Assembly: GCA_002269645.1 (NCBI GenBank)
Contig: NIVC01001883.1
Span: 124,001 to 188,000, forward strand
Length of the DNA: 64,000 nucleotides
Source: Macrostomum lignano
Lineage: Eukaryota
Direction of reading: 5' to 3'
Made by a program: the position numbers and the translations under genes. The notes below the pieces were generated by a model. The model was not told where the DNA came from, searched no databases, and saw only the letters and a program-made list of their open reading frames with translations. Position 1 is the first letter of the stretch, and each line of letters starts with the position of its first letter. Below are positions 21,601 to 24,600 of the stretch, in pieces.

Positions 21601-24600
21601 ATCTATCTATCTATCTATCTATCTATCTATCTATCTATTTATCTATCTATCAATCTATCTGTCTATCCATCTATCTATCTATCTATCTATCTATCTATCT
21701 ATCTATCTATCTATCTATCTATCTATCTATCTATCTATCTATCTATCTATCTGTCTATCTATCTATCTATCTGTCTATCTATCTATCTATCTATCTATCT
21801 ATCTATCTATCTATCTATCTATCTATCTATCTATCTATCTATCTATCCATTCATCTATTGTTAGATGGGTTAGCATAAGTTTCAGGGCCATCTTGAAATA
21901 ACTCCGATAGAGTAGAGTACTCCATGCACAAAAACAAGTACTTAGATTAACTGAGTGAACTGCACTGCGCACACAGCAGTTACAAAGGTGTTACTCAATG
22001 CAAAAAGCGCAGCGAGTCAAGCAAACTGAAATCCGGAGCTCGGGAATGCAGAGCTGCGAGGCATGTCAGAAGAGTAAAACAAAGCCAGGCGGTGCAACCG
22101 CGAAAAGAAAAATTGCCGCCGCCAAAAGGAGGGGCGATTCATTCTTGGCGCCATGAATTGCCGCCCCCCCCCGCCTGTCAAGCCGCTAATGACCGGGCAG
22201 GGCTGCAGGATAATCAGCGGCGCCGTGTCCTTCTGGGCCGGCCGCTCATCCCCATTTGCCTCGGGACCTGGCCGCTTTTTTGAGGATAATCAGAGCGGAG
22301 AACGAGGAGAACAGCTTTCGGGCGGCCTGGGCTAAAAGAAAAATGTCCAGAGCTGCGAAACCTTTTGGCATCTGAAGTGCCTCGCTGCGAATGCACGGCT
22401 TGCTGGGACCTCGGGCCGGGATTTATTGGTCGGTGGAGAGGCAGGATAGATAGATAGATAGATAGATAGATAGATAGATAGATAGATAGATAGATAGATA
22501 GATAGATAGATAGATAGATAGATAGATAGATAGATAGATAGATAGATAGATAGATAGATAGATAGATAGATAGATAGATAGATAGATAGATAGATAGATA
22601 GATAGATAGATAGATAGATAGACAGATAGATAGATAGATAGACAGATAGATAGATAGATAGATAGATAGATAAATAGATAGATAGATAGATAGATAGATA
22701 GATAGATAGATAGATAGATAGATAGATAGATAGATAGATAGATAGATAGATAGATAGATAGATCGTCAGCCTGCAGCAGGGTGAGCGCGGCTCCCCATTG
22801 GCTGCAAGGCAATTGGCCAAAGACACACACACGGAGGCCCAGTCAGTGGTGGCATGTAGCCCAGCTCATAGGCTGTTTTAAAGCGTCTCCTTTGCCTATT
22901 CAACTCTCTTCCCAAAGTGGGATTTCTCTCCAAGCTCGCCTGCCCCTGCTAGAATCAACGCTCGACCCCCGGGGTTCGCAGAGACGGTCGCAGACAGCTG
23001 GAGTTGCCGCCCCGCTATGCTCAGGCAGGTCCTGAGGCTCTCGCTGCTGGCTCTGCTGGTGCAAACTGCCTGGCAGCTGGGTGAGTCCTCGCTGAGCCCT
23101 GCGTCTGGCCAAACCGAAACTTTACTACATTTTCGGCGGCAATGTCAGTCAGGCGCCATCTCTCCGTCAGTCAGGCGCCATCTCTCCGTCAGTCAGGCGC
23201 CATCTCTCCTTCGCTCAGATGCCATCTCTCCGTCAGTCAGGCGCCATCTCTCCGTCAGTCAGGCGCCATCTCTCCGTCAGTCAGGCGCCATCTCTCCTTC
23301 GCTCAGATGCCATCTCTCCGTCTGTCAGGCGCCATCTCTCCTTCGCTCAGATGCCATCTCTCCGTCAGTCAGGCGCCATCTCTCCTTCGCTCAGATGCCA
23401 TCTCTCCGTCAGTCAGGCGCCATCTCTCCGTCAGTCAGGCGCCATCTCTCCGTCAGTCAGGCGCCATCTCTCCGTCAGTCAGGCGCCATCTCTCCGTCTG
23501 TCAGGCGCCATCTCTCCTTCGCTCAGATGCCAACTCTCCGTCAGTCAGGCGCCATCTCTCCGTCAGTCAGGCGCCATCTCTCCTTCGCTCAGATGCCATC
23601 TCTCCGTCACTCAGGCGCCATCTCTCCGTCAGTCAGGCGCCATCTCTCCTTCGCTCAGATGCCATCTCTCCGTCACTCAGGCGCCATCTCTCCGTCAGTC
23701 AGGCGCCATCTCTCCGTCAGTCAGGCGCCATCTCTCCTTCGCTCAGATGCCATCTCTCCGTCAGTCAGGCGCCATCTCTCCTTCGCTCAGATGCCATCTC
23801 TCCGTCAGTCAGGCGCCATCTCTCCTTCGCTCAGATGCCATCTCTCCGTCAGCCAGGCGCCACCAGTCTGACGGCAGCTATAGCTGATAAATATATTTCT
23901 GACAGCCCAAGAGTGCACGGCCGCACCGCAAGGATCGGGTTTACGTTCTCGATAAAATCATCCCAGTCCCCTAGCGGTAGTCCCTGTTTGCCGCCACCCC
24001 TCGCTTTCTAGGAAACACGCTAATCGTTTTACGACTCTGCATGTCCTGCCGGGCCGCTGGCGGTCAGGGCATTTCTGTGTTCGCTGCCTGGCATCTCCGC
24101 TGCACAGCACTTGACCCCCGGGTCCCCCGCTGCCGCCTTGCCCGCTCTGCCCCCCTCTGTCGCTATTAGCCAGGCTTTGTTTTACAGCCCAACACGCCGC
24201 CCCGAGGAAGGGGGGGGGGCGGAGCTCGGCAGAAATCCGAGGTGCGGCGGCAGCAGCAGCTGGCAACAGGCGGGCGGGCGGGCAGGCAGCGCAAGTACAA
24301 AAGCGGGGATTTTTTCCTCCTTCGGGGTCTTAAAGGGGGGGGGGCGACAGCCTCGACTTTCTTGTCCTATACGGGGCCGCCCTGCCGCAGCTCCAATGCT
24401 TGCTGCTTTCAGCTTTTCTCTGCGCATGCAGAATTTTCGCCACAAGTTCGAACTTTCCCTCTCCCTCATCCAGCCCGGGTGTCCTCGTTGCTGAAAGAAG
24501 CTGCGGCAGGGGTCTCCCATCCTTCATCTGGCCGCGAGCTTCTCCTACCGTTTAGTTTTAATCCTATTTTTGTAAAACAAAATTTAAAAAATCCCAGCTG

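Follow-up and report, generated by a model that had tools for sequence, protein, structure and literature searches.

Neurexin diversity has so far been described in terms of alpha, beta and gamma promoters and of splice sites. Reviews distinguish the alpha form, the vertebrate beta form, which begins before LNS6, and the gamma form, which has no LNS domain and also exists as a short form in invertebrates (PMC12665717, PMC10084454). Invertebrates are described as making long alpha and short gamma neurexins and little else (PMC12665717). Here we describe a neurexin gene of the flatworm Macrostomum lignano, located in positions 124001–188000 of contig NIVC01001883.1 (assembly GCA_002269645.1). 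This 64-kb stretch, hereafter the window, is animal DNA rich in repeats with a GC content of 53%, and its coordinates are converted to contig coordinates by adding 124000. Inside the first intron of the alpha form lies a short unit (23017–23080) that consists of an ATG, a signal-peptide-like leader and a splice donor. We estimate at roughly 78% the probability that this unit genuinely serves as an alternative first coding exon and yields a neurexin in which a signal peptide directly precedes LNS2.

The neurexin gene and its candidate alternative first exon

The gene model was assembled from open reading frames (ORFs) and splice-site scores, independently of a preliminary description of the window. 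It comprises 15 exons (12629–45443, forward strand), and its alpha form has 1571 amino acids. Pfam domains Laminin_G and EGF are found in exon 1, and five Laminin_G domains and EGF in the remaining exons. The 13 shared exons from 26662 to 45443 encode the region from LNS2 to LNS6, the stalk, the transmembrane segment and the C-terminal ...KEWYV. In a phmmer search against the PDB sequences, the best match was neurexin-1alpha (3qcw), with an E-value of 3e-119 and a colinear alignment over about 1050 residues (residues 230–1285). A weak match to the Syndecan domain was observed at residues 1259–1296. The gene has the alpha-neurexin architecture, (LNS-EGF-LNS)x3, and a single transmembrane segment with a short tail ending in the PDZ-binding motif KEWYV. 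Judged from its sequence, it is a true alpha-neurexin.

The ATG of the candidate exon (23017–23019) opens a frame of 21 codons, and an extra G at 23080 is followed by GTGAGT (23081–23086), which gives a phase-1 donor. The encoded leader passed our own heuristic scoring for signal peptides, with an n-region charge of +2, an 8-residue core (LSLLALLV) and a polar c-region. A junction between 23080 and 25917 is compatible in both phase and ORF in the gene model, and the short form with 23017–23080 as its first exon would have 1331 amino acids. The junction between exons 1 and 2 of the alpha form (RCER/) aligns to DCSQ/GKEEYIATFKG of bovine neurexin-1alpha, which is the position of the vertebrate splice site SS1, and the crystal chain of LNS2 only (2h0b) aligns from alpha residue 263. 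Because the exon-1/LNS2 junction aligns to both SS1 and the start of the crystallised LNS2, the short form would be cut at a domain boundary.

These results agree with the preliminary description, which had proposed a 21-residue leader opened by ATG 23017 and ending at a phase-1 donor G/GTGAGT. The window matches this proposal base for base. It had placed the exon 9.6 kb into intron 1, and the measured distance from the end of alpha exon 1 at 13412 to the ATG is 9,605 nt. The length of 1331 amino acids that it had given for a protein joined to the phase-1 LNS2 exon at 25917 and lacking LNS1-EGF1 was also obtained from the independent 15-exon model, and the ATTGG boxes and the TTTTAAA that it had mentioned upstream were located at 22797, 22812 and 22876. 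Its general proposal, a neurexin of the alternative-promoter type that starts at LNS2, is supported by the exon's own ATG, leader and phase-1 donor, by its position in the intron and by the same arrangement in a paralogue (see below).

The putative promoter, the 5′ untranslated region (UTR), the exon and the donor are all contained in a unique island (22764–23143) between two tandem repeats, and no second copy of this island was found within the window. The NF-Y-type pattern RRCCAATSR occurs at only five sites in the 64 kb, and two of them are the identical 9-mer AGCCAATGG, found upstream of both the exon-1 ATG and ATG 23017. In the paralogue, the upstream motifs are AGCCAATCA at −243 and TTTAAA at −118. 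Upstream, the two genes are laid out similarly, with a CCAAT box (−205 to −243), an A/T box (−118 to −141) and, on either side of a unique island, tandem repeats. As motif matches only, these elements hint at a promoter. A CpG island was also considered as a promoter mark and was dropped as uninformative in a genome without CpG depletion; the observed/expected ratio of CpG was 0.73 in the window, 0.60 in the candidate island and approximately 0.6–1.0 in most of the non-repeat sequence.

We infer from this arrangement that the exon is used in the window copy of the gene. Transcription most likely begins at a compact internal promoter in the unique island just upstream of the exon. Translation would start at ATG 23017 and produce the 21-residue signal-peptide-like leader. 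Its exon would be joined by way of the phase-1 donor (23080) to the LNS2 exon (25917), and the leader would presumably be cleaved from the protein. If the full C-terminal half is retained, the predicted product is a type I membrane neurexin of 1331 amino acids, SP-LNS2-LNS3-EGF2-LNS4-LNS5-EGF3-LNS6-stalk-TM-KEWYV (SP, signal peptide; TM, transmembrane segment), which would lack only LNS1 and EGF1. M. lignano is tractable by transgenesis with proximal promoters of up to 2 kb, and RAMPAGE data have been produced for the species (PMC5730564). The promoter could be tested directly with 253 bp of the island, and an isoform-specific knock-down would be feasible.

The GenBank protein PAA62984.1 (1220 amino acids, partial), whose genomic locus is identical to the window at 37,010 of 37,010 positions, agrees with the model from exon 4 through ...KEWYV. 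It confirms ten splice junctions and the exons from 28497 onward. The GenBank annotation of the window gene copy lacks the whole 5′ part, consisting of exons 1–3 and the alternative exon. Both PAA62984.1 and the homeologue model PAA53330.1 are 5′-truncated and open with translated intron (28437–28496 of the window), and the end of PAA53330.1 is a frame-shifted translation of the exon at 42291–42534. A 52-nt tandem triplication at 34729–34890 spans the donor of the exon at 34557–34780. It creates three identical donors, ACAGTG/GTGAGTTG, at 34780, 34832 and 34884, which correspond to phases 0, 1 and 2, and the RNA-derived protein uses the first.

A leader exon before LNS2 in a neurexin paralogue

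A full HMMER search with the translation of exon 5 yielded two close relatives in M. lignano, namely the gene's own proteins and a paralogue. The paralogous protein PAA86589.1 (BOX15_Mlig002077g3) is 47% identical to the window gene. It starts with MRRRAASEIAAAALLLCASVAAVTN, which is directly joined to LREETPTTFDGRG..., so that a signal-peptide-like leader is placed on LNS2. The MRRRAASEIAAAALLLCASVAAVTN leader is encoded by a separate 76-nt exon (10001–10076 of the paralogue locus L001), which ends with AATC/GTGAGT in phase 1. Splicing removes 6.5 kb and joins this exon to the LNS2 exon, whose acceptor reads ...cccctgcag/TTCGCGAGGAG. The GenBank annotation of the assembly was derived solely from RNA-seq data, using StringTie, TACO, a de novo transcriptome, TBONE and TransDecoder (PMC5730564). 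Because it is based on RNA-seq and not on ab initio prediction, the leader-LNS2 junction of the paralogue rests on transcripts, and we regard the paralogue as the decisive evidence for the reading of the window exon.

The protein PAA54791.1, from the homeologous copy of the paralogue, is of the alpha type (...GGRCEN/LREETPTTFDG), and the leader exon is skipped. In the homeologous locus L003, the leader exon occupies 23039–23114, between the end of alpha exon 1 at 10313 and the start of the LNS2 exon at 27602. It is thus situated within alpha intron 1, at a distance of 12.7 kb from alpha exon 1 and 4.5 kb from the LNS2 exon. The window has the same layout, with 9.6 kb of intron in front of the candidate exon and 2.8 kb between it and LNS2. 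The two paralogue copies differ within the leader exon by one synonymous change (GCT to GCC). An in-frame TAG is present 12 nt before the ATG in the paralogue, with no acceptor between them, and for this reason the exon can serve only as a translation start and not as an in-frame cassette. The paralogue sequence is already public as "hypothetical protein" or "Laminin G domain-containing protein", and it is not described as a neurexin isoform in the papers that we found.

The last 107 residues of PAA86589.1 map to L001 41142–41462, outside the exons of the alpha model, and the protein does not enter the exon at 42366. This tail is hydrophobic and of low complexity (..YQYWLSLYVPAVLSAYSIYSIYYSIFSL..), and the region could be an alternative last exon or derive from a transcript that was not processed. 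A second signal-peptide-like unit from ATG to donor, MKHCLLLFLMFVSDSTVCLLFAQ, was observed in the paralogue in phase 0 (38442–38510 in L001 and 48352–48420 in L003). It is located about 600 nt before the exon for the second half of LNS4, is phase-compatible and has no counterpart in the window gene. This unit, which would start in the middle of a domain, is probably due to chance.

Alternative explanations and other features of the window

Several observations weigh against a genuine first exon at 23017–23080. The c-region of the leader, QTAWQL, has no clean −3/−1 cleavage site (VQT/A or QTA/W). PAA62984.1 starts at 28437 and covers neither exons 1–3 nor the candidate exon. No nucleotide or peptide homology was detected between the exon region of the window and that of the paralogue, and the likeness is positional only. 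When the two islands were compared, the local score was not significant, and the global p value of about 0.02 (mononucleotide shuffles) probably reflects composition. The only RNA-supported paralogue model with a leader start has 687 amino acids and departs from the alpha form after LNS4. Finally, about 14% of the non-exonic DNA that aligns between the homeologous copies is taken up by perfect runs of at least 200 nt (up to 750 nt), a fact that reduces the value of the conservation described below.

The unit might be a chance ORF or an untranscribed, decayed relic in a GC- and CTG-rich intron, in which case the paralogue alone would still use such an exon. This explanation draws on the small size of the exon (64 nt), on its selection, in the preliminary description, from a whole window, on the lack of any annotated transcript over 12.6–28.4 kb of the window and of sequence homology to the paralogue exon, and on the unexceptional homeologue identity. 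Our own scan required 15–45 open codons between an ATG and a donor, and the encoded peptide had to contain a hydrophobic core of 8 residues and a positive N-terminal region but no acidic residue. With thresholds looser than its own values, the candidate exon was the sole signal-peptide-like unit on both strands of the 64 kb, and hence the single best match in 128 kb. In Markov simulations (orders 1–5), 0.03–0.08 units of this kind arose per 64-kb strand when all phases were counted. When the expectation is narrowed to the forward strand, phase 1 and the 12.5-kb intron, it falls to approximately 0.003–0.01, and the unit is correct in strand, phase and intron. The thresholds were also recalibrated to admit the RNA-supported paralogue exon. 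With these, a scan of three loci on both strands, 368 kb in total, returned the candidate exon, the paralogue exon in both copies and one unexplained match.

The codon usage also resembles that of coding sequence. GC content at third codon positions is 86% in the candidate exon versus 87% in the gene. With a codon log-odds of +5.05, the exon ranks among the highest 0.5% of intronic windows of 63 nt and falls within the values of real exons. Read in the same frame, the sequences immediately before the ATG and immediately after the donor both score below zero (−0.36 and −0.77 per codon, respectively), so that the coding bias begins at the ATG and stops at the donor. The unit exceeds chance, and the candidate exon is probably not a chance ORF. 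As it is also the positional equivalent of the RNA-supported paralogue exon, and neither homeologous copy has lost its ATG, ORF or donor, we regard the explanation by chance or decay as improbable.

In the homeologous copy (NIVC01003103.1), the island is 97.6% identical. All ten mismatches flank a 230-nt stretch of perfect identity that takes in the exon, its donor and the 158 nt preceding the exon. Since runs of 200–750 nt without a mismatch are common in the aligned non-exonic DNA, we treat this identity as weak evidence. An origin of the candidate by duplication of the 5′ region of exon 1 was rejected. The local alignment score between the two regions was 22, compared with 19.5 ± 2.3 for shuffles (p = 0.16), and the ATG-anchored match of 26/38 is what is expected of two Leu-rich leaders. 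As a separate observation, a unique segment at 21859–22444, between the inverted microsatellites (ATCT)91 and (GATA)80 (window 21493–22763) and 250 nt upstream of the island, is reversed in NIVC01003103.1 (889–2160 of locus L002) at 98% identity. The reversal reflects either inversion of the segment between the two repeats or a difference in assembly.

The same sequence could also be read as part of an in-frame cassette exon of the SS1 type, entered from the donor at 13412 and inserted between EGF1 and LNS2. The preliminary description had raised this point for the CGCAG ending at 22993. That part holds, since the acceptor does give an in-frame 87-nt cassette (HSWSCRPAM...), but the corresponding reading is excluded in the paralogue by the in-frame stop. 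The frame is open from 22882, and the acceptors ending at 22981 and 22993 are both phase-compatible, giving cassettes of 99 and 87 nt. Their scores of 1.55 and 0.85 overlap with the weakest of 14 real acceptors (0.96–3.95), the site corresponds to vertebrate SS1, and among the phase-1/phase-1 candidates in intron 1 these alone have a non-negative coding score. However, the acceptor tracts are rich in purines (6–8 pyrimidines of 15 versus 8–14 in the real acceptors), the codons that precede the ATG score below zero, and a Leu-rich hydrophobic core is unusual for an extracellular linker. The presence of an ATG and a signal-peptide-like sequence would have to be a coincidence of the rarity found in the simulations, and the alpha transcript of the paralogue skips the equivalent exon, which has its TAG 12 nt before the ATG and no intervening acceptor. 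A cassette is thus very unlikely.

Equally little credit can be given to spliced-leader (SL) trans-splicing at acceptor 22981 or 22993 as the source of the 5′ end of the same exon: SL trans-splicing affects 38.8% of M. lignano genes (PMC5730564) and AG acceptors are present 23 and 35 nt before the ATG, but both read TCGCAG and not the enriched motif YTNCAG (PMC8629364), and the SL-terminal ATG would be out of frame at either site and would open a short ORF overlapping ATG 23017. Because trans-splicing is favoured only where no cis donor lies upstream (PMC8629364), a transcript starting downstream of 13412, from an internal promoter, would be needed in any case.

The positions of the features are listed in Table 1. 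Retroelement gag- and pol-like frames (281 and 1260 amino acids) are located just downstream of the neurexin gene, at 48061–52160 on the forward strand. The IP_trans gene listed in the table comes after the neurexin paralogue as well (loci L001 and L003), and this neighbourhood is kept between the paralogues. Rfam gave no match within the 64-kb window.

Table 1. Coordinates of the neurexin gene, the candidate exon and neighbouring features in the window
Feature	Position	Strand	Remarks
Alpha exon 1	12629..13412	+	Signal peptide, LNS1, EGF1; ends GAC/GTGAGT, phase 1
Alpha intron 1	13413..25916	+	12.5 kb, mostly tandem repeats; at vertebrate SS1 position
Candidate alternative first coding exon	23017..23080	+	21 codons + 1 nt, then donor G/GTGAGT
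Intron from alternative first exon to LNS2 exon	23081..25916	+	2.8 kb
First LNS2 exon	25917..26069	+	Phase 1 in, phase 1 out; common to both forms; acceptor ...ccccacag
Shared exons 3–6	26662-26837, 28497-28655, 31402-32263, 34557-34780	+	
Shared exons 7–10	35629-35743, 39999-40419, 40597-40885, 42291-42534	+	
Shared exons 11–15	42912-43114, 43284-43452, 43856-44262, 44429-44562, 45071-45443	+	
Unique island	22764..23143	+	380 bp between (GATA)80 and a 22-nt minisatellite of ~33 copies
CCAAT box AGCCAATGG	12484..12492	+	145 nt upstream of exon-1 ATG; presumed alpha promoter element
CCAAT box, identical 9-mer AGCCAATGG	22795..22803	-	214–222 nt upstream of ATG 23017
Second ATTGG	22812-22816		At −205 from ATG 23017
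TTTTAAA, TATA-like box	22876..22882	+	141 nt upstream of ATG 23017; contains nearest in-frame upstream stop, TAA 22879
Two weak in-frame acceptors	Exon starts 22982 and 22994	+	99- or 87-nt cassette
Perfect stretch shared with homeologue NIVC01003103.1	22859..23088	+	230 nt: A/T box, UTR, exon, donor
SNAP-25-like exons	2222-3517	+	
Acetyl-CoA-synthetase-like long single-exon frame	5302-7404	+	ATG must lie in upstream exon
Phosphatidylinositol-transfer-protein gene	53400-56750	-	Pfam IP_trans

Comparison with described neurexin classes

Our literature search returned no paper on Macrostomum neurexins and none that describes a class starting at LNS2. A candidate for a similar protein was found in another organism. 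The full-length Logan transcript contig SRR17902662_19585 (4,236 nt) is filled by an ORF at 237–4124 that encodes 1295 amino acids. The protein begins with MQCLVVTAALFGSWWTLAFVGFLVVPTSCS/EKVPIVSAFTGQEY..., a signal peptide directly before LNS2...LNS6 and the transmembrane segment. It has five Laminin_G domains, a transmembrane segment and a C-terminal ...REWYV, and an in-frame stop is located 9 nt before its ATG. From residue 31 it is 33–35% identical to mollusc and annelid neurexins (Haliotis and Owenia), starting just after their EGF1. Other models that start at LNS2 (a partial one from Owenia, one from Trichuris and P0020) lack a leader resembling a signal peptide and seem to be truncated predictions. 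That neurexins starting at LNS2 form an old and widespread isoform or gene class, and not an oddity of Macrostomum, is a tentative and rather doubtful proposal.

If this proposal holds, the alternative first exon would predate the duplication behind the two M. lignano paralogues, and the class would have been overlooked because 5′-truncated neurexin models are usually dismissed as annotation artefacts. An isoform lacking LNS1-EGF1 only, if real, would provide a natural experiment on this N-terminal module, for which we know of no established ligand. It would also mean that the truncation of neurexin domains through promoter choice had an origin independent of the vertebrate beta promoter.

Among the known arrangements, the exon of PAA86589.1 resembles the candidate in being a signal-peptide-like phase-1 first exon with a GTGAGT donor, located inside alpha intron 1 before the LNS2 exon. 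It differs in belonging to another gene, in having a leader and flanks that cannot be aligned and in the shorter deposited form. The candidate also shares with vertebrate SS1 its place between EGF1 and LNS2 in the protein. In contrast to SS1 cassettes, which are used within alpha transcripts, it has its own ATG and leader, and the paralogue exon is preceded by an in-frame stop.

The vertebrate beta-neurexins (NRXN1–3) are transcribed from an internal promoter in an alpha intron, with a private signal-peptide exon and shared downstream exons (PMC10084454, PMC12665717). The window gene would follow a similar plan, with a putative internal promoter, and the transmembrane segment and PDZ-binding tail would be common with the alpha form. 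However, beta-neurexin enters before LNS6 and has one LNS domain, whereas the window form would enter at the EGF1/LNS2 boundary and have five LNS and two EGF domains. Its first exon adds essentially the leader only (21 residues), with no recognisable beta-specific mature sequence, and the whole-window scan detected no signal-peptide-like exon ahead of the LNS6 exon (42912). The defining features of beta-neurexin proper are absent from the window form. Gamma-neurexin (mouse Nrxn1-gamma and the short isoform of C. elegans and Drosophila) is a further internal-promoter product (PMC12665717), and the window form would resemble it in this respect. Gamma-neurexin lacks all LNS and EGF domains, whereas the window form would lack LNS1-EGF1 only, and the defining features of gamma-neurexin are likewise absent from it. 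Judged from its layout, the window feature would work like a beta promoter, but its predicted product has the defining features of neither beta- nor gamma-neurexin.

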